Virus record (IMG/VR): IMGVR_UViG_3300004151_000006
Coordinates: 62,001-126,000 of that record
DNA length: 64,000 bases
Reading direction: 5' to 3' (one strand)
Shown: positions 16,623 through 49,742 of the stretch, in pieces
Layout of the letters: the number at the start of each line of letters is the position of its first letter
How positions within the stretch are numbered: position 1 is the stretch's first letter
Translations under genes and position numbers: made by a program
The notes under the pieces: model-generated
What the model was told of the DNA's origin: nothing
Database searches by the model: none
The model's input: the letters and a program-made list of their open reading frames with translations, nothing else

Positions 16623-18674
16623 ATGGCTGAATTCATCAAATTCAAAACTGCTGTAGCTAAACAATTTAAACTGATGTGTGAAAGTAATATATTGTATCGG
16701 GTAGATGTAAGTAAAGATGAATTGTGGGAAACTTATTTGGAATCTTATCCTGAAGAAACTAATCAAATTTATAAAGTGCGTAGAGAATATGATTGTAATT
16801 ATTGTAAGCGATTTATTCGTACAATTGGTGATGTGGTGATCATTACTCCTGATAATAAGTTGATGTCTATCTGGGATATCGATGTGGATGTACCCCATTT
16901 TCAATTGGTAGCTGATAAGATGTCTGAGTTGGTAAAGTCAAAACCTATTTATAGTAAATTCATGCATATTGAACGTGTGGCTGGTGTAGATAAGAATTTC
17001 TATGAAATCATCAATCCTGATGAAAGTAAAAGTACTGGTACATATGAACACTTCTTTGTAAATATCCCTGACATTTATGTTGCATCTGAAACTACTATCA
17101 ATGAAATTACTAATATGGTACGTACTGGTCAACAAGTATTTAAGCGTGCGTTGGATACTATCAACATTGAAGCTTTGGATGTAGTATTGGAACTCATTGA
17201 TCAAAATACTTTAGAACGTGGTGAAGAATTCAAAGCTATCGTTGAACGATTCAAAGATTTAAAGATCGAATATGAAAAATTAACCAATGAAGAAGAAAAA
17301 GAATTGTGGGCATGGAATACAAGTGTTAATACAGCCAATGGTCTTGTACATATTCGAAATCATGCTATTGGTACATTACTCATTGATTTATCTGAAGATA
17401 CTGAATTGGATGAAGCAGTACGTAAGTTTGAATCGGTGATGGCACCTGAGAATTATAAACGTACCAAATCTGTTGTTACAAAGAGTATGATTGATAAAGC
17501 CAAAAAGACTATCACTGAACTTGGATATACTTCTGCTTTGGAACGTAGACCAGCCACTATCAATGATATCACTGTCAACAATATCTTGTTCGTAGATAGA
17601 AACATTACGCCAAAACTCAATGGTGATGTATTTGATATGCTTGCTAAGACTACTAAGGAAAAGAAACAGTCTTTTGATAAAGTAGAAGATGTGACCATCG
17701 ATACATTTGTAAAAGATATTTTACCCAATATCAGTACATTGGAGATGATGGTGGAAAATAAACATAGCAATAATTTCATGACACTCTTGACAGCTAAAGA
17801 TCCCACTGCTAAATATATGTTTAAATGGGATAATCCTTTCTCTTGGTCATATCGTGGTGAGACAGCAGATGCTATCAAAGAACGTGTAAAGGCTGCAGGT
17901 GGTAGTGTGACTGGTGATCTGTGTATCAGATTGGCATGGGATAATGAAGATGATTATGATCTCCATGTACGTGAACCTAATGGATATGAGATCTTCTTTA
18001 TAAATAAAGGACGTATGTCTCCAAATGGTGGTATGTTGGATGTGGATAAAAATGCTCAAGGATATACTCTTACAACTACACCTGTGGAAAATGTCATCTA
18101 TACTAATCGTAGAAACATGCAAGAAGGTATCTATCTAGTATATGTACATAACTATTGTCAGCGTCGTAATGTGGATTATGGGTTTGAATTGGATATAGAT
18201 TATCTTGGTAGTGTGACAAAATTTAGTTGGGATAAGCTGTTTAAAACTAATGAACGAGTCAATGTGGTAGCATTTAAATATACATATGAAACTGGAATTG
18301 AAATTATGGATTCTATCCCAGCTAGTGATATGTCTAAGATCATTTGGAATATACCCACACATAAATTTGTAAAAGTGAAAACTATGATGTACTCACCTAA
18401 CTATTGGGATGATCATGGTGTTGGTAATAAGCATTATTTCTTTGTACTCAATGATTGTAAATGTGATGAAGCTGTCCGTGGTTTTTATAATGAATTCTTG
18501 AAAGAAGAACTTCATCTTCATCGTAAAGTGTTTGAAGTGTTGGGTGATAAACTCAAGATGGGTGTTGAAGATAATAGCACTCTTTGTGGTGTTGGATTTT
18601 CTAGTACACTTAGAAATGAAATTGTGTGCCGTGTGACTGGGGCATTCACTCGAGTCCTTCGAGTGAAGTTTTAA
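16623..18674 (+). CDS. conserved large-phage protein with YfaP/DUF2135-like domain
   Basis: CNYC motif; LAWDNEDDYDLHVREPNG...LDVDKN...VENV segment; AAGGAGG RBS. Confidence 0.6.
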   Translation: MAEFIKFKTAVAKQFKLMCESNILYRVDVSKDELWETYLESYPEETNQIYKVRREYDCNYCKRFIRTIGDVVIITPDNKLMSIWDIDVDVPHFQLVADKMSELVKSKPIYSKFMHIERVAGVDKNFYEIINPDESKSTGTYEHFFVNIPDIYVASETTINEITNMVRTGQQVFKRALDTINIEALDVVLELIDQNTLERGEEFKAIVERFKDLKIEYEKLTNEEEKELWAWNTSVNTANGLVHIRNHAIGTLLIDLSEDTELDEAVRKFESVMAPENYKRTKSVVTKSMIDKAKKTITELGYTSALERRPATINDITVNNILFVDRNITPKLNGDVFDMLAKTTKEKKQSFDKVEDVTIDTFVKDILPNISTLEMMVENKHSNNFMTLLTAKDPTAKYMFKWDNPFSWSYRGETADAIKERVKAAGGSVTGDLCIRLAWDNEDDYDLHVREPNGYEIFFINKGRMSPNGGMLDVDKNAQGYTLTTTPVENVIYTNRRNMQEGIYLVYVHNYCQRRNVDYGFELDIDYLGSVTKFSWDKLFKTNERVNVVAFKYTYETGIEIMDSIPASDMSKIIWNIPTHKFVKVKTMMYSPNYWDDHGVGNKHYFFVLNDCKCDEAVRGFYNEFLKEELHLHRKVFEVLGDKLKMGVEDNSTLCGVGFSSTLRNEIVCRVTGAFTRVLRVKF

Positions 18675-21170: not shown

Positions 21171-22277
21171 GTGAACCATTTGGAGGTTATTGTGGAAAAT
21201 ATTTCACACGATTTAGTAAAACATAGAAAATTAAATATTATTATGGATGGACAATTTGGTTCTACTGGTAAAGGGAGTTTAGCTGCATGGTTGGGTACTA
21301 TATCACCAGTTGAAATATACGTAAGTAATCTTAGTCCAAATGCTGGACACACCTATGATTTACAAGATGGATATGGTCCTAGAGTAGTAAAACAATTACC
21401 TATTGGTGGGATTATTAATAAACGATCACAGATTTATTTATCTCATGGATCAATCATCGAACCAAAAGCTTTATTAAAGGAAATAGAAACATTTAATGTT
21501 GATAAAGACCGAATATGCATTGATCCTAGAGCTGCTATTGTTACCGATGAATGTAAAGCTTTAGAAAAAGATAATTCTTCTTCAGTAGCTAAGATAGCTA
21601 GTACACAGAGTGGTACTGGTGTAGCACTTAGTCAAAAAATCATGCGTAGTGCTAAATTAGCAGAAGATATTCCAGAGTTAAAAGATATGATACATGAATT
21701 TGATTTAATGGAACATTTACAATTAGGATCAACTGCAGTTATGGAGACATCACAGGGTTTTGATCTTGGATTAAATTATGGACTTAGTTATCCACATTGT
21801 ACCTCTAGAGATGTGACACCATCTCAATGTTTAGGTGATGCAAAAGTGCATCCAAAATTCTTAGGTAATGTATTTCTTACTTTAAGAACATATCCAATAC
21901 GAGTGGGTAATTTGAAAGTTGGAGATATTACATATGGTGAAAGTGGACCATTTTATCTAGATTCTAAAGAGCTGAGTTGGGAAGAATTGATGGTCACACC
22001 AGAGAAAACTACAGTCACTCAACGTATACGTAGAGTAGCTACATTTTCACCAACACAATTGAAAAGAACGATATATTACACTAAACCAAAACATATATTT
22101 TTGAATTTTATCAACTACATCTTAACTGAAGAATATATTGAAATTATAATAGATGCATTCAGACAAATAAAACAATTTCCAAGTTTATTAGGATTCGGTA
22201 GGAGTATACTTGAAATATCACGAGCAAGAAATTTAACAGAATCCAAAGATATCATGTATGCACAATTATGTAAATAA
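21171..22277 (+). CDS. purZ: PurZ-type succinylaminodeoxyadenylate synthetase (PurA homologue)
   Basis: DGQFGSTGKG (Ser in place of the PurA catalytic Asp), SPNAGHT, QGFDL..YPHCTSRD, RTYPIRV, TTVT.R.RR, FLNFINY; short ~360 aa form. Confidence 0.8.
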   Translation: MNHLEVIVENISHDLVKHRKLNIIMDGQFGSTGKGSLAAWLGTISPVEIYVSNLSPNAGHTYDLQDGYGPRVVKQLPIGGIINKRSQIYLSHGSIIEPKALLKEIETFNVDKDRICIDPRAAIVTDECKALEKDNSSSVAKIASTQSGTGVALSQKIMRSAKLAEDIPELKDMIHEFDLMEHLQLGSTAVMETSQGFDLGLNYGLSYPHCTSRDVTPSQCLGDAKVHPKFLGNVFLTLRTYPIRVGNLKVGDITYGESGPFYLDSKELSWEELMVTPEKTTVTQRIRRVATFSPTQLKRTIYYTKPKHIFLNFINYILTEEYIEIIIDAFRQIKQFPSLLGFGRSILEISRARNLTESKDIMYAQLCK

Positions 22278-24213: not shown

Positions 24214-24513
24214 TCAAGCACAGGGGAGAGGCACCCATCTCCTGGGTGCCTCTCCTGACCTGGCTGTTCACCCCAAACAAGGAAGCTCATGGTGCCCACA
24301 TACACCATAGGTATAAGACAGCTGATCCTCATCTATCCTACACCCATAGGATATTTGAGATGAAATATATTTAGATCTATATTTTTTTTTCATGATGAAA
24401 GAAATAAACTATATACTGTGAGTGATCCCATTATATATTCAAAACATCTTATGTCTATAGATACTCACACTAGTAATAGTGTTTACTATATCATTTGGAA
24501 AGGAGTCAAGCAA

Positions 24514-25305
24514 ATGGATGCATCTTGGAAATTTGTAGTGGAGGCTATGTCTGTAGTCGATGGTCGTATGATCAAAGGACTCAAGCCTGATGCTCAAGGA
24601 TACTACCATGATATCCCTTTGATGGGACTAGGTATGTGTGCTCGTAGTGGTATCTATTACAATCCTAAACCTATCATCGATGCTATCCGTTTACCAAAGA
24701 GTACATTCAATATGAAACTCACTGATGGTAATCTCTTTGGATGTATCAATCATCCTCCTACCTTTAAGAAAGAAGATATCCCTCTCATGTTAGAGATAGA
24801 TCAAAAAGAAGTCTCTCATCATTTCAAAAAGATCTATAGTGGTGATCTAGGTAATGACACTGGACTCATCTTAGGATGTCTTCGTCCTTGGGGTCCCTAT
24901 GGTCAGTACTTAGAGACCTCACTGCAAGATGAACATGTCAATACCTCATTCTCTGTACGATCATTGTGTAAACAGTATATGGAGCCCAACACTAGACGTA
25001 TGTGTCGTGATGTCGAGATCTTAGTGACGTTTGATTGGGTCAATGCTCCTGGATATAAAGAGGCTAGTAAACGCTATGTACCTGCTATGGAGAGTTACAC
25101 TATTGATATCATCCCTGAAGAGTTCATTGCTGCTGTAGAGATCTGTGGATGTGAGTCTATCAAAGACATTGATCTCATGAGAGTGTTTGGTATGAGTCAG
25201 ATCGAGATCGGTGAGATCCGTGGTGAGTATAGAGCTGGAAGAAAGTCATTCATTGGCACTGATGGGGATAGACATAGCTTGGTCCATGCACTGTTGGGAT
25301 GTTAG
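24514..25305 (+). CDS. prohead (head maturation) protease, phiKZ gp175-like
   Basis: GCINHP, VSHH, SFSVRSL, TFDWVNAPG motifs; candidate self-cleavage site AME-S; AAGGAG RBS. Confidence 0.85.
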   Translation: MDASWKFVVEAMSVVDGRMIKGLKPDAQGYYHDIPLMGLGMCARSGIYYNPKPIIDAIRLPKSTFNMKLTDGNLFGCINHPPTFKKEDIPLMLEIDQKEVSHHFKKIYSGDLGNDTGLILGCLRPWGPYGQYLETSLQDEHVNTSFSVRSLCKQYMEPNTRRMCRDVEILVTFDWVNAPGYKEASKRYVPAMESYTIDIIPEEFIAAVEICGCESIKDIDLMRVFGMSQIEIGEIRGEYRAGRKSFIGTDGDRHSLVHALLGC

Positions 25306-25313
25306 GAGGATAT

Positions 25314-26051
25314 ATGTTTAAAGTACCTAAGATGCTTGATGGTGAAATCGAATCACTCCCTGTAGATCCTTTGGAGATCCCAGAGCCTACACCAGAATCT
25401 ACTCCAATTCCAGTGAAGACAGAAGATTACAGTGACCAATATTTACATAGTCTCACTGATGCTAAACTCATCCCTACTAAAGCTCTCACTATTGAGCATA
25501 CTGATATCATGGGTCCTATGTCAAAGTGTCCAGTCTTTATCCATGAGCTCCAAGATGGGAGTCTGCATTGTATCGCATATGTGATAGGTCAGATCGGTGA
25601 TGTCAACGATTATCTTGATCTCATTGATATGATCACAGTACTACGTGAGCAAGATAAGATGCGAGTATATATTGATAGTCCTGGTGGATATGTGGCTACT
25701 GGAGCACATGTGGCTAGTGCTATGTCTTTGTGTAATGGTGAAGTCACTACTGTAGCAAGAGGTTTTTGTGCATCAGCTGCATCCCTCATGTGGTCAGCTG
25801 GACACAAACATCAACTCACCCCATTTTCTTTATTCATGTACCATATGAGTAGTCATGGTGATATGGGTAATAGCTTAGGTATCCGCAATCGTGCTGATGA
25901 TATGATCAGATATGTCAAGACTACATTACTCCGTGTACCTTTAGAAAAAGGTCATATCACTCCTGAAGAATTAGATCAGATTTGTATCAAAGGTGAAGAT
26001 CAATATATTGATGCAAAGACTATGTATCAGCGTCTTCGTAAAGGAGTCTAG
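25314..26051 (+). CDS. ClpP-like serine protease
   Basis: YIDSPGG, CASAASL (catalytic Ser), FMYHM (His), EDQYIDA; acidic Pro-rich N-terminus. Confidence 0.85.
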   Translation: MFKVPKMLDGEIESLPVDPLEIPEPTPESTPIPVKTEDYSDQYLHSLTDAKLIPTKALTIEHTDIMGPMSKCPVFIHELQDGSLHCIAYVIGQIGDVNDYLDLIDMITVLREQDKMRVYIDSPGGYVATGAHVASAMSLCNGEVTTVARGFCASAASLMWSAGHKHQLTPFSLFMYHMSSHGDMGNSLGIRNRADDMIRYVKTTLLRVPLEKGHITPEELDQICIKGEDQYIDAKTMYQRLRKGV

Positions 26052-26054
26052 TAT

Positions 26055-26825
26055 ATGAGTCAATCACCTTCACCATATGGGTTTTTAAAAGGATTGATGA
26101 TCAATATGGATGACATCCCTGCTGATCCTTTGGTAGTAGAAGAGACTCCCATTGAACCTATTGATACTCATCCTGATGAGACACCTGATATCACACATCG
26201 TGTAGATGGAGTCACTATAGGTACTGAGAGTATCTCATCTTTCTATCAATCATTTCAAATGGAAAAACAAGATCCACTCACTATAGAACAGAATGCTCTC
26301 AATACTCCTAGTAAAATGGGTATGTTCAACACTGTAAAACCCATGAATCACATACCCCAGATACGTACTACTGACCAGGTCAATTTCAGAGTATTCCTCA
26401 AAGCTCAACATGAATTTACAGATGAGTATATCACCAGGTTATGTAGATTCTTAGATAGTCGTACACCCAATCAAACTATCACATTTTATCTTGGTAATAG
26501 TTTATCATCTAGATACACCATGATCATTGGATCTGTCTTGTCATCTATCATGTCTTGTCCAGCTAAGACGATAGCTATTGCTGCTGGATGTTGTGGTGTA
26601 CCTGAGTCTATGATGTGGTGCTTTTGTCAGGAAAGACATATCGCTGAATATAGTGCACTCACTTTTGGTGGTACCAATCTCATCACCCACTATTCTTTTT
26701 ATAAATACTATTTAGAAGTCTGTTTTGAAAGAGCTGTGGAAGTGGGTATATTGAGTAAAGAGCAAGTGGATACTATTTGGAATGAAAATAAAGAGATCAT
26801 GATCACATATGTAGAACAGCAATAG
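26055..26825 (+). CDS. degenerate ClpP paralogue (ClpR-like, catalytic residues lost)
   Basis: TIAIAAGCCGVPESMMW aligns to TTVARGFCASAASLMW; LTFG replaces FMYH; acidic N-terminus. Confidence 0.6.
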   Translation: MSQSPSPYGFLKGLMINMDDIPADPLVVEETPIEPIDTHPDETPDITHRVDGVTIGTESISSFYQSFQMEKQDPLTIEQNALNTPSKMGMFNTVKPMNHIPQIRTTDQVNFRVFLKAQHEFTDEYITRLCRFLDSRTPNQTITFYLGNSLSSRYTMIIGSVLSSIMSCPAKTIAIAAGCCGVPESMMWCFCQERHIAEYSALTFGGTNLITHYSFYKYYLEVCFERAVEVGILSKEQVDTIWNENKEIMITYVEQQ

Positions 26826-27228: not shown

Positions 27229-27254
27229 ACCTTCTAACCTAAACGAGGTATATC

Positions 27255-28136
27255 ATGCAGCGCATTATCACTCACTCCGGTAAGTTTCACGCTGACGAAA
27301 TCATTGCATGTGCCATCCTTCGCATGCTCAATCCACAGATCGAGATCATCCGTACCCGCGACACCAGCATCATCACCGACGATGATATCGCGGTCGACTT
27401 CGGCGGGATCTATGATCCCGAGAAGTATCGATTCGACCATCACCAAAAGGACGCCCCCAAGCGTCCCAATGGCAAGTCCTACTCCAGTGCCGGCATGGTC
27501 TGGAATTCCCCCCAGGTCCACTGCATGATGATGCAACTGGGCATGCCCAGCAATCTGCTCTCCGAAATCGTAGCTAAGGTTGATGAGAGCTTCATTGCCC
27601 ACATCGATGCGATCGACTCCGGGGAAGGATCTCTCGAAGGCTACAGTTTCAGCGCAGCCATCGGGTCCTTCAACACGTTCAATCTCCAGGATGGAGAAGA
27701 CGTGTGTTTCATGAAGGCCCTGGACTTTGCGCTGCAATTCCTGCCAAATATCATCCATGAGACTTATCTCCGCCTCAGTGAGGCGGAGTATGTCCGCGAT
27801 GCCGATACGACGTTCGATGGCAAGGTCATCGTCCTTGGTCGGGGGGTCCCATGGATCGAGACCGTCCTGACCGAGGCGAAGTTCGACAATGCCGAGTTTG
27901 TCATGTTCCCTCATATTGATGGGGTGACATGGAGACTCCAGGCCATCCCCAAGGAGATGGGGAGCTTCGAGAAGCGTCGAGCTTTGCCTGCCTCTTGGGG
28001 CGGATTGAATGGTCAAGACCTGGAATACGTCACCGGCGTGAAGGGTGCCGTGTTCTGTCACAAGGCCCTGTTCATTTGCGGTGCTAATAGCTTTGAAGCC
28101 ATGTTTGACATGGCTGGGTTGGCAGTGTCGCAGTAA
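27255..28136 (+). CDS. MYG1 (UPF0160) family DHH 3'-5' exonuclease
   Basis: THSGKFHADE, VDFGG.YD, FDHHQ, SSAGMVW, FCHKALF; markedly GC-rich. Confidence 0.9.
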   Translation: MQRIITHSGKFHADEIIACAILRMLNPQIEIIRTRDTSIITDDDIAVDFGGIYDPEKYRFDHHQKDAPKRPNGKSYSSAGMVWNSPQVHCMMMQLGMPSNLLSEIVAKVDESFIAHIDAIDSGEGSLEGYSFSAAIGSFNTFNLQDGEDVCFMKALDFALQFLPNIIHETYLRLSEAEYVRDADTTFDGKVIVLGRGVPWIETVLTEAKFDNAEFVMFPHIDGVTWRLQAIPKEMGSFEKRRALPASWGGLNGQDLEYVTGVKGAVFCHKALFICGANSFEAMFDMAGLAVSQ

Positions 28137-28143
28137 TTTATAT

Positions 28144-28177
28144 CTGCATGGGGGCCCATCCTTGGGCCCCCATGCAG
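28144..28177. terminator. 15-bp stem between convergent genes
   Basis: CTGCATGGGGGCCCA-TCCT-TGGGCCCCCATGCAG. Confidence 0.8.
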
Positions 28178-28190
28178 TACTGTGATTATT

Positions 28191-30221
28191 TTATTTTTTC
28201 ATTTCTTGGATCACCATATCTAAAGTCTGGGTTTGATCAGATAAGGTGTGTATAGCTTTTGTAGAATGTTGCATAGCTGTAAGATTTTGTTTAGCTATAT
28301 CTGCTGTAGAGATGATGAGTCTACCTATTTCTTCAGCAGTAGCAGATTGTTCTTCAGCAGCTATAGCAATGGATTGTATTTGACTAGTAGTACCATCAAT
28401 AAGAGTATAGATCTCAGAGAGTGTATCACCACCTATCTTGACACGTTTATCTATTTCATTGATAGCTGAAGCTACTTTCTCAACATAATTAATACTTTTT
28501 AATGTACTATCTTGAACAGTGGTAATGGTGGTTTCAATATCACGTGTAGCTACTTGTGTACGTTCTGCTAACTTTCTTACTTCATCAGCCACTACAGCAA
28601 AACCTTTACCAGCTTCTCCGGCGTGAGAACTTTCGATTGCCGCGTTAAGTGCTAATAAATTAGTCTGATCTGCAATATGTGAAATAGTTTCAATGATCTC
28701 ATTGATACCACCGACTTGATCACCTAATACATGAATATCATTTTTAAGGATGATAGCTAACTCTCGGATACCATTGATTTCACTGATGATAGTTTGAATA
28801 ACAGTAGTTCCATCATGTGCTTTCTGTTTAGCTATAGATGCTGATTCACTAGTGTGACTGCTATTTTTAGCTACTTCTAAGATGGTAGCATTCATTTCTT
28901 CTACTGCTACTGCTGTTTCATCCATCTGAGTAGATTGTGCTTCACTACCACGAGTAGATTGTTCTATTTGTGTGGATAAAGATTCAGTGTGATTAGCTAT
29001 CTCTCTGACTGTAGTGTCTAATTTGATAGCAGCTTGGTGGATACCATCTTTGAGTGCTTGCTCAGCAGCAGCTTTAAGCCGATTGACATCTGTGATATCT
29101 TGGATGAGTTCAATATATCCGATGGTATCACCATGTCTATTTTTGAGTATGGAAGTATCCACCATGTAATCATTTTCTGGTATGCCAGGTATATTGAAAT
29201 GGCATTTTGTATTACCTTGTTTACATTGTTTTACTGCGCAATCAGTTTCATTACAGATGGTAGTACCTAAAGATATACAAGCTTTTCCTATATAAGTTTC
29301 TTTATCAAGATGAAAAGTCTTGAGAGCATGATCATTAAGATATGTGATATATTTTTCATTACTGACTACCATGATAGGAAAACTAATAGAGTTCAATACA
29401 TTTTCATACCAATGAAGTTTATCCACTACTGTATCCAATGCTTTATTGAGATACTTTGATGTTTTACCTATTTCATCATCACTGTTGACCTGGAGCCTTG
29501 TAGTGAAATCACCTTGAGAAAAAATGATAGCTGCATTAAGTATCTTCTTTAAAGGTACACTGATCTTTTGTACAATGAAGATACTGATAGCTATACCAAT
29601 CATAAAAGATAAACCAAGTACAATCAATATAGTATCCATATCACGATTGACAATACGTTGTGTCTCTATCTTAGCTAGTGAAGTAGATTCTTTAGTATCT
29701 TTGATGATAGCTAAGATCTCATTGAACATTTGACCGTTGACACGATTTCCAACAGTATAACAATAATCAAAAGCATTTTGATATAAATCAAGATTATTAA
29801 GATCATTTTCCCATGTATGTATCATATCAAATATCTTATTGTTTTCTCTTTTAGCTTCATCTAAAGTGGTAGTGAATTTCTCCCATAATACCTTTTCTTT
29901 ATATCCTCTGGGTATAGTACTGAGTGTTTTGATTATTTCAGTATATTTATCTCTATGTAATTTGATATCCTCGTATTGTTTAGCTCTTTGTTCTTTAGTG
30001 ATATTTCTTTTAAGCAACATAGTCTGTGCTAACAATATTGATTGAAAATGATAGGGTAAAATATTGAGTGCTTCTAAACTTGGTAGATGTGTTTCTGTGA
30101 TAGTGCTGAGTGATTCCTCTGCATCCTGCATCCCAGTGTATCCTACTATCCCACTAATAGATGAAATACAGATCAGGGCCATAGTACCTATGATCAGTTT
30201 AAGTTTTAAAGAGATGTGCAT
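28191..30221 (-). CDS. methyl-accepting chemotaxis protein (TM-4HB sensor-TM-HAMP-PAS-MA)
   Basis: [12 protein letters not shown]...[21 protein letters not shown]; HAMP PLKKI...GDFT..DEIG; PAS-like segment; two TMs; AGGAGG RBS. Confidence 0.93.
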
Positions 30222-30290
30222 ACTACCTCCTATATATGTTGTGTGCGTATAATATCTGAGTCATCAATACATTGAAATCCATGAATATAC

Positions 30291-30311
30291 AAATATATAT
30301 TACATATAGGA
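30291..30311 (+). promoter_or_regulatory. phiKZ-type early promoter
   Basis: AAATATATATTAC. Confidence 0.6.
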
Positions 30312-30338
30312 TACAACCATTTATTTAGAGAGGTATGT

Positions 30339-30653
30339 ATGTCTGAAAGATCTCGTATTTGTTTTACTGTTGATAGTGATCTGGTAGAGCACATCATCAT
30401 GCGGCTAGAAGCTACCTGGGGAATTAAAAATGCTTCAGTGAATCCCATTTTCTCAGGTACTCATGGTGAGTACCTAAAGATGCTTCGAAAGAAGAAAAAG
30501 ATGACCCAACAACAATTAGCTACACTTTCTGGGGTACATCAAGTGAATATCACAATGATGGAACGTAACAAACGTACTATTGGTTTAAAGAGTTCAATAG
30601 CTTTAGGTGAAGCCCTTGGTGTCAACCCGTTATCATTTCTTATGGAGGAATAG
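30339..30653 (+). CDS. XRE-family HTH regulator
   Basis: LKMLRKKKKMTQQQLATLSGVHQVNITMMERNKR. Confidence 0.88.
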   Translation: MSERSRICFTVDSDLVEHIIMRLEATWGIKNASVNPIFSGTHGEYLKMLRKKKKMTQQQLATLSGVHQVNITMMERNKRTIGLKSSIALGEALGVNPLSFLMEE

Positions 30654-33113
30654 ATGATTTCATTACCTATCGATAAATACTATCCGGAGATCATGGCTTC
30701 TATCAAAGATTATCCGGTGACACTCATTGTGGGTGAGACTGGGTCTGGTAAATCAACTCGTGTTCCTCGGATGTGCATTGAAGATGGTCATTCTTGTATC
30801 ATCACTCAACCCAGACGTTTGGCTGCTATCAATGTGGCTAAGCGTGTGGCAGATGAACTCAATGGTGACTTGGGTGGTGTGGTGGGTTATTCCACCAGAT
30901 ACGAAAAGGAGTATTCAAAATATACTACTTGTTTATTTTGTACTGATGGTCTTGGTCTGGTGAGAGAGATGTTGACTGAACATAAGTTTGACATCCTCAT
31001 CTTAGATGAAGTCCATGAATTTAATTTATCTATTGAAGCCTTGTTGGCTTGGATCAAATATCAGTTGGATCATGGTGAAATGAATCGTAGATATGTACTC
31101 ATGTCAGCCAGTGTAGATGTGATTAAATTTAAAGAATATTTTGGTGAATATCTCCATATTTTAGAGGTTGAAGGTCGTACCTTTCCAGTGATAGATCACT
31201 CTGAAAAATATAGTAGAGTGATCTGTGATGAGCATGATGTATTTAAAGTGGTTGTTAATTTGATACATGAAGAAAAAGATATCCTTATGTTTTTGCCTGG
31301 TAAAAAAGAGATCTCTGATTATAAGCGTAGATTCAATGATGCTGGTTTAAATGCAGAGGTATTAGTGTTACATGGTGATATGACATATAAAGAACAGTGC
31401 TTAGCATTTGGAGAATATGGTAGACCTAGGTTAATCTTATCTACTAATGTGGCACAGACTTCAATTACACCAGATGTTGATGTGGTATTGGATTCTGAAT
31501 TGGAAAAGTGTATATTGATACGTGATGGTGTAGAAGGTCTTTATCTGCAACGTATCTCCAAAGCTGATGTGCAGCAACGAATGGGTCGTGCAGGTAGAAC
31601 CAAAGTGGGTGAATATATTTCATTTATTCAGGTAGCCAATTTAGATGTGGAAAGTTTGGTACAAAATGATTATGCCACACCCGAGATAGAACGGTTGTAT
31701 CTTGATCATGTATATCTTAAATTGTGTGCTGCTGGATTGGATCCGCTTCAGTTGGATTTCTTTCACAATCCCAATATCCGCCAATTGGCAATGGCTAAAA
31801 AAGGTCTTTATCAATTGGGTTGTATCACTTTTGATAGTGAAATTACGGAATTAGGTAAAATACTGGTGAAATATCCACTGGATGCACGTTATGCTAAGAT
31901 CCTTTATTTAGCATCTGAATATGGTGTCTTTGAACCCTGTCTTCAGATCATATGCTGTTTGATGTCAAATGTGAGATATAAATATCCCAGAAGAGATGTT
32001 TCTTCTGATCTTGAAGCATACGGTACATATTTACAATATACAAATAATAAATCTAATGATGAGTTGAAGCGTGCTGAGCTCAATCTTAAAGCACATTATG
32101 GTATGATAGAAATGTACAAACGCATGTTTAAAGATAAAAATATTGAAATCAATAATGATAATACACATGATGATTGGAATAAAATGCATGATACAATTGA
32201 ACGTATCTTCGTATCTTGTATGTTAGATAATTTATGGGCTACAGGTAATATCACATATGGAAATTTTTATCATTTGGATTCATTGAATGTCAAACAGAAT
32301 GTGTGTACTGAAGCAGATATTGTAGGTAGATCAGTTAATAAAAATTATAACAATACACACAATATGGTATGTTGTGTTGGTATCCCCATCGACATTCAAA
32401 TAAAAACTAGATATGGATACAATACTTTAAGACTTTTGAATTTCATTATTCCTTATCGTGATATTTGGATGGAATGGTTCCCTGATAAATTTAAATTGGA
32501 TTTGGAATTTAAAGAGAGTTTCCAATATAATGTGGTGGGGTATCCAATTATGAAATGTGGTAATATTAAATTAGGAAATACTCAATATAGTGGTTTAGAT
32601 TTTCATATTGTAGATAAATGCCCCACAGCATTACAGTACATTAAGTTCTTTAATATGCGCATAGCACAATATTTGAATTCATTTAAAGATGAATATAATG
32701 TAGTCCCTTCAGATAAATCTGTTGAACAATTGAATATACTCATCCTTGGTATGTTGAAAACATATGCACGTTGGAATAATTTTGAAATGTGGGATCCATG
32801 GACTAATCTTAGAATTTATCGTGGTAAACAACCCAATCAATATGGTGAAGTTAACCATTTTGCAGAATATAAAGAATTTACAGATGCTCGAGATGATATT
32901 CCTGAAGTAAAAGTGGATTATAAACAATATATTCCAGTGCCTAAAATGATTCCTAAAAAGGAGGTGCAACTTTGGCATTCTGTTAGTGCTGGAAAAGTAA
33001 TGTGTCCTAAAGGACATGTCATGAAGATGTCAAAAGCATTGGATCATGATCCAACTAAGTTATATTGCCCTATCTGTAAGACTGAGGGCAAGATCACTGG
33101 TCTTGGATCTTGA
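30654..33113 (+). CDS. HrpA/HrpB-like DEAH-box helicase with C-terminal zinc ribbon
   Basis: GETGSGKST, TQPRRLAA, DEVHE, MSAS, FLPG, STNVAQTSIT, QRMGRAGR; CPKGH...CPIC. Confidence 0.9.
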   Translation: MISLPIDKYYPEIMASIKDYPVTLIVGETGSGKSTRVPRMCIEDGHSCIITQPRRLAAINVAKRVADELNGDLGGVVGYSTRYEKEYSKYTTCLFCTDGLGLVREMLTEHKFDILILDEVHEFNLSIEALLAWIKYQLDHGEMNRRYVLMSASVDVIKFKEYFGEYLHILEVEGRTFPVIDHSEKYSRVICDEHDVFKVVVNLIHEEKDILMFLPGKKEISDYKRRFNDAGLNAEVLVLHGDMTYKEQCLAFGEYGRPRLILSTNVAQTSITPDVDVVLDSELEKCILIRDGVEGLYLQRISKADVQQRMGRAGRTKVGEYISFIQVANLDVESLVQNDYATPEIERLYLDHVYLKLCAAGLDPLQLDFFHNPNIRQLAMAKKGLYQLGCITFDSEITELGKILVKYPLDARYAKILYLASEYGVFEPCLQIICCLMSNVRYKYPRRDVSSDLEAYGTYLQYTNNKSNDELKRAELNLKAHYGMIEMYKRMFKDKNIEINNDNTHDDWNKMHDTIERIFVSCMLDNLWATGNITYGNFYHLDSLNVKQNVCTEADIVGRSVNKNYNNTHNMVCCVGIPIDIQIKTRYGYNTLRLLNFIIPYRDIWMEWFPDKFKLDLEFKESFQYNVVGYPIMKCGNIKLGNTQYSGLDFHIVDKCPTALQYIKFFNMRIAQYLNSFKDEYNVVPSDKSVEQLNILILGMLKTYARWNNFEMWDPWTNLRIYRGKQPNQYGEVNHFAEYKEFTDARDDIPEVKVDYKQYIPVPKMIPKKEVQLWHSVSAGKVMCPKGHVMKMSKALDHDPTKLYCPICKTEGKITGLGS

Positions 33114-33720: not shown

Positions 33721-35967
33721 ATGTTGATGTTTGAATCAGATTTTACAAGACCGTTTTCTATTAAGTTGGGCCATGATGTATCTAGGACATTTTATCCTAG
33801 ATATCATGCCAATACAAAAAATGATAGTTTTATAAGAGTATGTATGATATTGAAAAATATGGGCGTAGAAAACCATTTATTCCCTTTAGGTATTTATCAT
33901 CATGAATTATTAGATGTAGATCCAAGATCTAATGATCTCTCAGATGAACAAAGACTCATGATAATGACAGAGATTAAGATTAATCCGTGGTATTATTTTC
34001 GAGAGGTAGTGAGAATCCCCACTACTGGTGGTGAACCAATCCCATACATTTTATCGAGAGCAAACTTAGCTCTTACGTGGTGTTATTACAATGGTATTGA
34101 TGTTGGCTTAGTACAACCTCGTCAAACTGGTAAAACTATTGGTACACAGGCTATCATGTCACATGTTATGTATTTCTTAGGATTTCACTTTGAAATAGCC
34201 ATGCTCACTAAAGATGGTGCCTTAATTAAAGACAACGTAAGACGTCTTCGGGATATTAAAGAAACATTACCAAAATGGATGATACTTAAAAATTACAATG
34301 GTAAAGATGAAGATAATAAAGAAGGACTTTCTTATACTTTTTTAGAAAATATCTATAAAACTTTTACCAATGCTATTGATGATGCAGGTGCTGATAAACT
34401 CGGTCGTGGTATGACTTCTCCCACTCAACATTGGGATGAAATTGCTTTCTTTAGATATATCTGGACAACATTTCCTGCTGCAGTGGCAGCTACTGGTGCT
34501 GCTCGAAAGAATGCTGCTGAACGTGGACTTCCTCATGCTAACATATATACCACTACTGCAGGTAACCCAGATAAAAGATCTGGTAAATTTGCTATGGATC
34601 TTTTTTTAGATTCATGTTTATTCACTGAGAAACTTTATGATTGTAAAGATCTTAATGATCTTCATAATACCGTAATTAAAAATAGTGTCCAAGGTACGAA
34701 GTCTGTCTATTGTGTATATTCACATAGACAATTGGGTTTCACTGATGATTGGCTTAGAGAACAGATTTTACGTACTAAAGCTACACAAGAAAAAGTGGAT
34801 AGAGATTATTTGAATTTATGGAAATCTTCTTCTGATGATGGACCTATTCCACCAGATTTATTAGATAAAATCAATAGAAATGTTATTGAACCCCTGTATA
34901 GTGAAGTGAAAGATAGATACATTCTTAATTGGTATCTCTCTGAACAAATGGTCAATTCTGAAGAATTTAAAAATCGTACGCTTATCGCTGGGCTAGATAG
35001 TTCAGAGATGATAGGTAGAGATTTTACTACATTTGTCATTCTTGATTCGTATGACATGAGTGTAGTTGGTACACTTCGGTGTAATGATTCTAATGTTATT
35101 AATCTTGGTAATCGCATAGCACAGATTATGTTGAAGTATAGAAAGATGATATTAGTACCAGAATGTAAATCTACTGGAGTAGCTATTGTAGATGCTATCA
35201 TCAATGTACTCAAAGAAAATGGTATCAATCCTTGGCAACGTATCTTTAATTTGGCAGTACAAAAGAAAGATGAAAGGGAGTTTGAAAATTTTAATATTCA
35301 TACAGAACCCACTGAAGGTCTTAATAAGAAGTTGTTTGGATTTAGGACTACTGGAGGTACTGGTTTATTTAGTCGTAATATGCTTTATAAATCCACAATG
35401 CTAAAAGCTATATATCTTAACTATTCCCGTGTCCATGATGAGATGCTCATTAAAGAATTCAATGGACTTCGTACTAAAAATGGTAGAATAGATCACAATG
35501 AAGATAGCCATGATGATATGATCATCTCTTATTTATTGGCTTGTTTCTTTATATTCTTTGGTAAGAATCTTCATCATTATGGGATCAAACCAGAACTCTT
35601 TTTACATAAAATTACCAATGATGAAGATGGTGTGGATAAGTATAAAAAACAAGAACAATTGGAAGTTCGTAGTCATATAGCCCAATTAGAACATGCTGTC
35701 AGAAGATCAACTTCGCATCTTGTACGTATGAGTTACGAACGTGAACTCAACGAAATAAAGAGATATCTTGATGATGGGATCATTGATGTAAAACCTATTG
35801 CCACTACTCAGTTTAAACGTGATAGTGAATTGGTGTCTACTTTTAATAAACCCGATACTGAGCAAGCAGTTAACTTATTATCTAGTGTATACACTGCCAA
35901 TAATATGAATACTTCAAAATACCAATATCCTCAATATAGGGTAGGCTATGGTGGCATAGTCAATTGA
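33721..35967 (+). CDS. terL: terminase large subunit, phiKZ-type
   Basis: NPWYYFREVVR, QPRQTGKT (Walker A), WDEIAF (Walker B), TTTAG, GLDSSE, RIDH...HDD nuclease motifs. Confidence 0.9.
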   Translation: MLMFESDFTRPFSIKLGHDVSRTFYPRYHANTKNDSFIRVCMILKNMGVENHLFPLGIYHHELLDVDPRSNDLSDEQRLMIMTEIKINPWYYFREVVRIPTTGGEPIPYILSRANLALTWCYYNGIDVGLVQPRQTGKTIGTQAIMSHVMYFLGFHFEIAMLTKDGALIKDNVRRLRDIKETLPKWMILKNYNGKDEDNKEGLSYTFLENIYKTFTNAIDDAGADKLGRGMTSPTQHWDEIAFFRYIWTTFPAAVAATGAARKNAAERGLPHANIYTTTAGNPDKRSGKFAMDLFLDSCLFTEKLYDCKDLNDLHNTVIKNSVQGTKSVYCVYSHRQLGFTDDWLREQILRTKATQEKVDRDYLNLWKSSSDDGPIPPDLLDKINRNVIEPLYSEVKDRYILNWYLSEQMVNSEEFKNRTLIAGLDSSEMIGRDFTTFVILDSYDMSVVGTLRCNDSNVINLGNRIAQIMLKYRKMILVPECKSTGVAIVDAIINVLKENGINPWQRIFNLAVQKKDEREFENFNIHTEPTEGLNKKLFGFRTTGGTGLFSRNMLYKSTMLKAIYLNYSRVHDEMLIKEFNGLRTKNGRIDHNEDSHDDMIISYLLACFFIFFGKNLHHYGIKPELFLHKITNDEDGVDKYKKQEQLEVRSHIAQLEHAVRRSTSHLVRMSYERELNEIKRYLDDGIIDVKPIATTQFKRDSELVSTFNKPDTEQAVNLLSSVYTANNMNTSKYQYPQYRVGYGGIVN

Positions 35968-49538: not shown

Positions 49539-49615
49539 GGCCGGGTAGCACAGAGGCAGTTTGCGCCCCGCTTACACCGGGGAGGTCGGGATTTCAAAAT
49601 TCCCCCTGGCCACCA
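49539..49615 (+). tRNA. tRNA-Val(UAC), CCA encoded
   Basis: Acceptor GGCCGGG/CCTGGCC, anticodon arm CCCCG-CTTACAC-CGGGG, T-loop TTCAAAA, 3' ACCA. Confidence 0.85.
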
Positions 49616-49621
49616 ATCAAT

Positions 49622-49694
49622 TCCTCGGTAGCACAATTGGCAGTGCTGGCGACTGTTAATCGCCCCGTTGGCAGTTCGAGTCTGTCCCGAGGAG
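49622..49694 (+). tRNA. tRNA-Asn(GUU), CCA not encoded
   Basis: Acceptor TCCTCGG/CCGAGGA, anticodon arm GGCGA-CTGTTAA-TCGCC, T-arm GGCAG-TTCGAGT-CTGTC. Confidence 0.92.
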
Positions 49695-49742
49695 AAGATA
49701 TCGGAGCGATTTCGCTCCGACCATATATTGAGCAGTGTGATC

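Follow-up and report, generated by a model that had tools for sequence, protein, structure and literature searches.

Deposited genomes of large phages already include homologues of methyl-accepting chemotaxis proteins (MCPs). Vibrio phage vB_VmeM-Yong XC31 (290 kb) carries a 610-aa receptor whose signalling tip reads EAARAGD, Escherichia phage A4 (Asteriusvirus, 355 kb) carries a 470-aa receptor with the tip EAAKAGE, and MCP, CheR and CheY genes are listed for Nitrosospira phages in a 2026 preprint; a functional characterisation of phage-borne MCPs was not found in the literature. Here we describe a complete MCP gene on the minus strand, at 28191..30221, of a 64,000-nt stretch of DNA (the window, to which all coordinates refer) that comprises bases 62001-126000 of IMG/VR virus record IMGVR_UViG_3300004151_000006. 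The product matches PHROG family 8572 (phrog_8572; 9.4 × 10−65), whereas the receptors of the XC31 and A4 type are not orthologous to it, with at most 34% identity, restricted to the signalling domain, and other sensor domains. The gene has long resided in this phage lineage, where it has been ameliorated and kept under selection, rather than having arrived recently, and the tip of the encoded receptor departs from that of its own cellular subfamily. The interpretation that we favour, although we hold it with slightly less than even confidence, is that this orphan phage sensor enters the arrays of the host and adds a phage-controlled, bias-shifted input to the motility of the infected cell.

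Among cellular receptors, those of Solidesulfovibrio and Maridesulfovibrio are the nearest named matches, and Thermodesulfobacteriota make up most of the nearest Atlas clusters, in agreement with the Desulfovibrio-like architecture proposed in an earlier note made from the sequence alone. The 4HB/Cache-HAMP-PAS_4-MCP receptors of Thermodesulfobacteriota (P0099, P0100 and P0103-P0105) share with the phage protein the HAMP domain, a Cys-rich PAS domain and 40H signalling; they are 30-42% identical to it over the full length and 46-47% identical in the signalling domain, and the length of the C-arm and the positions of the methylation-type sites match. These receptors belong to genomes of 58-61% GC and have EAAR or EAGR tips and strict methylation motifs, whereas the phage copy has 34% GC, the tip ESSH, Val or Ile at position 2 of the methylation motif, and no che genes nearby. 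The cellular relatives lie on contigs of 58-61% GC, among housekeeping genes. Given the Thermodesulfobacteriota affinity of the nearest homologues, a sulfate-reducer-like host is plausible.

The open reading frame (ORF) encodes 676 aa from an ATG start and, as the same note had read it, specifies an intact full-length receptor with the order transmembrane segment (TM), four-helix bundle, TM, HAMP, PAS and signalling domain. All parts of the gene given below are on the minus strand. TM1 (about residues 6-28, 30138..30206; hydropathy above 1.6 over residues 1-28) is followed by a periplasmic four-helix-bundle ligand-binding domain (about residues 29-195, 29637..30137), which matches PF12729 (4HB_MCP_1, residues 4-140) with E = 7.5 × 10−12, and by TM2 (about residues 196-217, 29571..29636; hydropathy peak of 2.84 over residues 194-225). 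The HAMP domain (residues 215-264, 29430..29579) was identified with PF00672 (2.8 × 10−8) and in the structural model, and the two hydrophobic segments (1-28 and 194-225) together with 4HB_MCP_1 and HAMP give the classical MCP topology with a periplasmic sensor. A cytoplasmic PAS domain (residues 276-379, 29085..29396) matches PF08448 (PAS_4) with E = 1.2 × 10−6 and has a PAS fold in the model. The remainder is a cytoplasmic signalling hairpin (residues 386-676, 28194..29066) in which MCPsignal (PF00015) covers residues 458-638 with 136.4 bits against a cut-off of 34.6 (E = 1.2 × 10−39), placing the protein among the MCPs. The signalling domain matches PcaY, TM1143 and Tsr in the PDB; it aligns with Thermotoga maritima TM1143 without gaps over residues 402-672 (271 residues) and is 28 aa (4 heptads) longer than that of Tsr over residues 426-668. 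The C-arm after the tip Gly spans 141 aa, or 20 heptads, as it does in 112 of 216 EAAR relatives, a length expected of the 40H class and shared by most relatives.

The HAMP-PAS segment was modelled with a pLDDT of 89 and, among PDB entries, most closely resembles the HAMP-PAS modules of WalK/VicK (9a5d, E = 1.7 × 10−12, and 4i5s), with about 24% identity to the PAS domain of S. aureus WalK (7duc, 4mn5). WalK and VicK differ in being histidine kinases, and, as aligned in 16 family members, a four-Cys motif (C315, C323, C328 and C333, 29223..29279) sets the MCP subfamily apart. This motif, C-x7-C-x4-C-x3/4-C after a WYE motif, is common to the phage clade and the cellular subfamily, and the Cys-rich PAS domain may be a redox, metal or Fe-S sensor.

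The window is part of a single 286,688-bp contig that is 100% complete according to CheckV and has inverted terminal repeats (IMG/VR record). The completeness of this record, together with hallmark genes near the receptor, namely a large terminase (33721-35967), an S80-type prohead protease (24418-25305), a ClpP-like protein and virion structural proteins, identifies the replicon as a jumbo phage. Across the complete 286.7-kb genome, the receptor gene alone matched MCPsignal, no match was obtained for CheW, Response_reg, CheR or CheB, and one sub-threshold match to HATPase_c fell in an 847-aa ORF. The phage thus lacks the cognate cheA, cheW, cheY, cheR and cheB of a self-contained chemosensory system, and the receptor is an orphan that is able to work solely via host proteins.

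We identified two relatives of the phage, the Logan contigs L001 and L002, in addition to exact copies of the window phage. A megablast search with 12 kb against 50,697 phage records gave no match, a protein-pattern scan of IMG/VR found no further relative, and a metagenome scan recovered the same phage only. All copies of the window phage (L004, L006 and runs X1, X3, X4 and X5) were identical in DNA, with no close variants found, and contigs of four public runs, from freshwater (2019) and wastewater (2024), showed no difference in the gene, also at the His codon (28623-28625) discussed below.

In both relatives, the receptor occupies the same locus, with the terminase and helicase region to one side and the ClpP and S80 protease region to the other; the core genes of these genomes have diverged to 44-81% amino acid identity with the window phage. 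The receptor of the window phage is about 64-66% identical to that of L001 and 48% identical to that of L002. Between the window and L002, identities were 48% for the receptor, 44% for the helicase and 61% for the terminase; between the window and L001, they were 66% for the receptor, 78% for the terminase and 65% for a neighbouring 349-aa protein. The receptor has thus diverged to about the same extent as its neighbours. In the phylogenetic tree, the three phage receptors form one clade (support 98/93). In the two orthologue comparisons, the proportion of nonsynonymous differences (pN) was far below that of synonymous differences (pS) (0.36 vs. 0.68 and 0.23 vs. 0.71), similar to the neighbouring terminase and helicase, and every module was constrained, with pN/pS of 0.37-0.55 for the ligand-binding domain and 0.24-0.48 for the PAS domain; phylogeny and selection across related phages were among the checks that the earlier note had proposed. 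The gene has a GC content of 0.342 compared to 0.349 for the genome, and a GC content at third codon positions (GC3) of 0.235 compared to 0.251 ± 0.05 in 14 phage ORFs, which bears out the earlier statement that its codons are AT-rich like those of the rest of the phage. Synteny in diverged relatives, phage-like GC and GC3, and pN far below pS indicate that the gene is a long-term resident, as had been suggested. These data also bear on the possibility that the receptor is a decaying passenger gene without current function. Decay could be reflected in the departure of the tip and the methylation motifs from the subfamily consensus and in the splitting of the gene in one relative; however, the 676-aa ORF is intact, the same in all four runs, preceded by a strong ribosome-binding site, constrained in each domain and retained at one locus across phages whose core proteins share 44-72% identity, and we consider decay very improbable.

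Two contigs with receptors close to the phage clade were observed alongside. The sister of the clade, P0004 (L234, 3-3146), has the tip EAARAGD and is encoded on a 3.9-kb contig with a GC content of 0.285, next to a gene with weak virion or tail PHROG matches (1.2 × 10−8 and 1.5 × 10−6); it may be another phage-borne copy, with the ancestral tip. The sister-group receptor P0103 (L235, 6001-9292; 35% identity, EAAR tip) adjoins a HisKA/HATPase_c histidine kinase on a stretch that has a GC content of 0.344, is dense in ORFs without known family and looks phage-like, although no PHROG structural matches were found; the P0103 protein is also found on a 247-kb contig.

The part of the receptor that departs from the cellular subfamily is the kinase-control tip (residues 526-541, 28599..28646), with four differences from the subfamily consensus that correspond to A386S, A387S, R388H and R394K of Escherichia coli Tsr. 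The tip block aligned without gaps to full-length Tsr (6s1k_E; residues 7-67 of the fragment against 361-421 of the chain), such that E530 is equivalent to Tsr 385, S531 and S532 to 386 and 387, K539 to 394, and His533, encoded by the CAC codon at 28623..28625, to R388, which upholds the equivalence stated in the earlier note. The Glu-x-x-Arg pair (Tsr E385-R388) is accordingly replaced by E-S-S-H, whereas the flanks of the tip, which in MCPs contact CheA, CheW and neighbouring dimers, are canonical, being identical or near-identical to the consensus as in other MCPs. Glu-x-x-Arg is not universal in these proteins (His in Treponema, Thr in Arcobacter-type receptors), so that its loss leaves the assignment to the MCPs intact. 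The tip block is also the best conserved part of the protein between the window phage and L002 (78% identity).

We compared this tip to those of other receptors. In the 146 nearest 50%-identity cluster representatives, 145 tips read EAAR and one reads EAGR; neither SS nor His occurred in any of them. The exact ESSH tip was found in none of 244 proteins, 80 genome loci, 401 Spirochaetota genomes or IMG/VR, nor among the matches listed in the species-genome scan. In IMG/VR contigs, 4 of 80 receptor tips read EAAH, and the single match to an SS-type tip was rejected as a chance occurrence inside a 1663-aa non-receptor protein. Tips of the [ST][ST] type are present in species genomes, where the matches listed include at least 47 ESSR (mostly Clostridium, with Brevibacillus, Cyclobacteriaceae and Spirochaetota), at least 25 ESTR (Gemmatimonadaceae), at least 3 ESSK, at least 2 ESSQ and at least 1 ESTH. 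One Leptospiraceae and one Clostridium genome have mostly EAAR tips with one ESSR each, and several proteins of spirochaetes and of the Arcobacter type read EAAH or EAAT, the latter being typical of Arcobacter-type receptors. In one Treponema sp. metagenome-assembled genome (G002), all six receptor tips have His at the position of Tsr R388 (four EAAH, one ESAH and one ESTH), a lineage-wide replacement of a residue that is usually described as invariant. By comparison of sequences, then, the phage tip is derived relative to its own subfamily, and its exact form was seen nowhere else that was searched; the claim that a near-invariant tip has been mutated is true of this subfamily but not of receptors at large, given the frequent ESSR tips, the native His of Treponema and the EAAT of Arcobacter.

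The phage could nonetheless encode an ordinary receptor with a neutral or host-fitted tip, in which case ESSH would only track what the CheA and CheW of the host tolerate. The ESSR tips of cellular genomes and of L002, the existence of ESSK, ESSQ and ESTH, and the Treponema genome with His in each receptor are what such tolerance would predict. In the nearest homologues, which represent the presumed host lineage, however, Arg is present in 146 of 146 and is preceded by AA in 145, His-type spirochaete receptors belong to another length class, and ESSH is restricted to this phage as far as was searched, so that we regard this explanation as unlikely. A Treponema-like host or a spirochaete source of the His was considered and rejected: the Treponema-type receptors resemble the phage protein in their native His, which in the ESTH receptor also follows polar residues, but they are not its nearest relatives and have C-arms of 24 heptads rather than 20, which argues that the His of the phage arose independently of theirs. 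Within the phage clade, the tip of L002 reads ESSR and L001 keeps the Arg (VVGAR); together with the EAARAGD of the sister, these tips suggest that the order of changes was likely EAAR to ESSR to His, with His arising only on the terminal branch of the window phage.

The function of the tip Arg has been studied in E. coli Tsr by means of E385-R388 mutants (Gao, Cheng and Parkinson 2019, PMC6681711). With every R388 replacement, trimers formed without defect and signalling complexes were assembled. Those with A, V, T, M or F were OFF-shifted, those with G or W were ON-shifted, D and E locked the receptor OFF, and K left adaptation almost normal. The proposal in the earlier note that the phage may use its receptor to steer infected cells or jam chemotaxis remains conjectural, and the step from a trimer-of-dimers contact to jamming does not fit the E. 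coli data, as all replacements still formed trimers, with the output shifted or locked. The phage receptor resembles these mutants in that H533 takes the place of R388 opposite E530 (E385), which removes the salt-bridge partner; it differs in that the Tsr changes were single, engineered and made in a 36H receptor, whereas those of the phage are natural, lie in a 40H receptor and combine R388H with A386S, A387S and R394K. Because the Tsr mutants join trimers and yet shift the output, the best transfer from Tsr is that ESSH would alter output bias and adaptation rather than entry into the array.

Under the interpretation that a phage-controlled input is added to host arrays, the phage would make its own membrane chemoreceptor and depend fully on the CheA, CheW, CheR and CheB of the host. 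Two sensors, the periplasmic four-helix bundle and the cytoplasmic Cys-rich PAS domain, the latter probably responding to redox state or metal, would feed via HAMP into the 40H-type hairpin. With its canonical CheA/CheW-binding flanks, the receptor should enter host arrays, most likely those of a Thermodesulfobacteriota host, and there it would add an input of the phage's choosing to the control of swimming in the infected cell. By analogy with E. coli, the removal of the Glu-Arg pair in ESSH should change the ON/OFF bias and adaptation and leave the joining of trimers and arrays unaffected. The intact domain set, the constraint on every module, the canonical tip flanks, the C-arm of 20 heptads, the retained Glu pairs and the presence of SS and of His, each in working cellular receptor lineages, are in favour of this interpretation.

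Several observations weigh against it. Most R388 replacements in Tsr failed to support chemotaxis, and R388H is not among the replacements listed above. Methylation-type sites are retained, as the earlier note had stated, insofar as the Glu pairs are present, at 441/442 in the N-arm (28896..28901, where cellular relatives read ATAMEEMNAT) and at 623/624 and 630/631 in the C-arm (28329..28355). The strict consensus [ASTG][ASTG]xx[EQ][EQ]xx[ASTG][ASTG], which cellular relatives satisfy, is missed at both main sites because position 2 is Val (site 437) or Ile (site 619) where the relatives have Thr. The selection estimates come from only three orthologues with saturated synonymous divergence (dS), so that a recent relaxation of selection may have escaped notice. 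Finally, L001, the closest relative, has another sequence in place of the hairpin turn and a split gene, a state that fits poorly with a function dependent on a canonical kinase-control tip.

Some of these observations would be expected if the receptor acted as a jammer, locking or scrambling the kinase output such that chemotaxis or motility is abolished and sensing is secondary. The infected cell might then possibly be kept in place, energy might be saved, and superinfecting phages that depend on the flagellum might be blocked. The Tsr replacements that are locked, or OFF-shifted with labile kinase activity, point in this direction, along with the failure of most of them in chemotaxis; so do the erosion of the methylation consensus at position 2 of both sites and the remodelling of the tip across the phage clade (ESSR, ESSH, and split and extended) while that of the cellular subfamily is invariant. 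A pure jammer, however, would not need sensors, whereas purifying selection acts on the periplasmic and the PAS sensor in all three phages; the tip flanks are canonical, and His and SS are both compatible with function in natural receptors. On balance, we consider jamming rather unlikely.

The L001 orthologue was compared in more detail at the DNA level. At positions 8317-8537 of L001, 211 nt stand in place of the hairpin turn (the codons that follow the Arg, as far as GF), and the receptor was called as two genes, with products of 566 and 168 aa. The insert consists, in order, of about 33 in-frame residues added to the N-arm, a TAG stop, GGAGG, 9 nt, a new ATG and about 30 residues in frame into the C-arm. 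Both halves are open and conserved, and the C-arm half is 68% identical to the window protein with a pN/pS of 0.30. An intron or mobile element was considered and rejected: the insert had no Rfam match and no second copy in the genomes compared, and its GC content is phage-like. An intein is unlikely because of the stop codon and restart inside the insert. A complex prediction paired the two L001 products over their full length, with heptad-spaced contacts that include the inserts (0.55 vs. 0.00 for the best control); this weakly supports pairing, as 51 of 78 solved complexes and 2 of 108 mismatched pairs scored at this level, and predictions at or below 0.60 are more often wrong unless pairing is likely beforehand. 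The split in L001 represents either a receptor made of two pieces, its tip open and extended, or a disruption of recent date. If the split receptor works, the chemoreceptor hairpin can function, or be repurposed, without a covalent turn.

Repurposing of this kind would be the case if the phage receptors used the scaffold as a sensor whose tip has been retargeted from CheA and CheW to another partner of the phage or the host, giving an output other than chemotaxis. All three phage orthologues have a changed tip, che genes are absent from the phage, and the insert of L001 extends both helices and opens the hairpin while the halves remain intact, conserved and predicted to pair. In the window phage and L002, on the other hand, the canonical CheA/CheW-binding flanks form the most conserved block, and the state of L001 could be a recent disruption; we judge such an output decidedly unlikely.

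With respect to its surroundings, the receptor gene lies on the strand opposite to almost all of its neighbours. Reading of the sequence identified an AGGAGG ribosome-binding site 4 nt before the ATG (30226..30231, minus strand), an AT-rich, 117-bp divergent intergenic region (30222..30338) with the presumed promoters of the receptor and of a helix-turn-helix (HTH) gene, and a perfect GC-rich inverted repeat with a stem of about 14-15 bp (28144..28177) between the convergent receptor and MYG1 genes, likely a two-way terminator. This repeat was unlisted by the consensus terminator scan because it has no T run, and promoter and terminator scans gave matches no better than in shuffled sequence. 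The location on the opposite strand, the gene's own ribosome-binding site, the terminator-like hairpin, synteny in L001 and L002, and nearest homologues that are cellular are the features of a moron-like accessory gene. The divergent HTH gene (30339..30653, plus strand; PF01381, 6.7 × 10−12) encodes a 104-aa XRE-family protein that is a possible local regulator; it occupies the same position in L001 and not in L002. It is adjoined by a gene for an 819-aa DEAH/HA2-type helicase (30654-33113, plus strand), which is present in L002 and missing at that position in L001.

On the other side of the receptor, a MYG1/UPF0160-family gene (27255-28136, plus strand; Pfam E = 1.9 × 10−66) has a GC content of 0.544 and a GC3 of 0.69, compared to a phage GC content of 0.349. 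It is absent from L001, and the public gene call took an antisense ORF (27234-28061, minus strand) instead. High GC and absence from L001 indicate that it was probably acquired recently. An attempt to infer the host from this gene failed, as the best match had 56% identity and the others, at most 42% identical, were scattered across Proteobacteria. Further along, at 24418-26825 on the plus strand, the S80-type prohead protease, the ClpP-like protein (PF00574) and a 256-aa protein without family form a trio that is kept in L001. Elsewhere in the window, all on the plus strand, we observed a phage-encoded adenylosuccinate synthetase homologue (21171-22277; PF00709, public gene call), a 683-aa protein (16623-18674) with an end-to-end match to phrog_1735 (E = 8.8 × 10−252; DUF8224) that is highly conserved in jumbo phages, and tRNA-Val(TAC) and tRNA-Asn(GTT) (49539-49695), adjoining phage tRNA genes.

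The only marked departures of the phage receptor from its cellular subfamily are at residues that set the kinase output in the best-studied model. With a complete genome, an old and selected receptor, and a natural series of tips (EAAR, ESSR, ESSH and split), the system is a useful test case. A broader, and in our estimate rather doubtful, proposition is that a lineage of jumbo phages has long kept a captured receptor and re-engineered its tip, from EAAR through ESSR to ESSH and to the split form in a sister, while the sensors stayed under selection, making it a viral Trojan component of chemosensory arrays; if true, a virus would for the first time be seen to rewire bacterial behaviour at the level of the receptor. 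If such receptors do enter host arrays, phages would be able to steer or freeze infected cells, which would affect the site of lysis in redox-stratified sediments.

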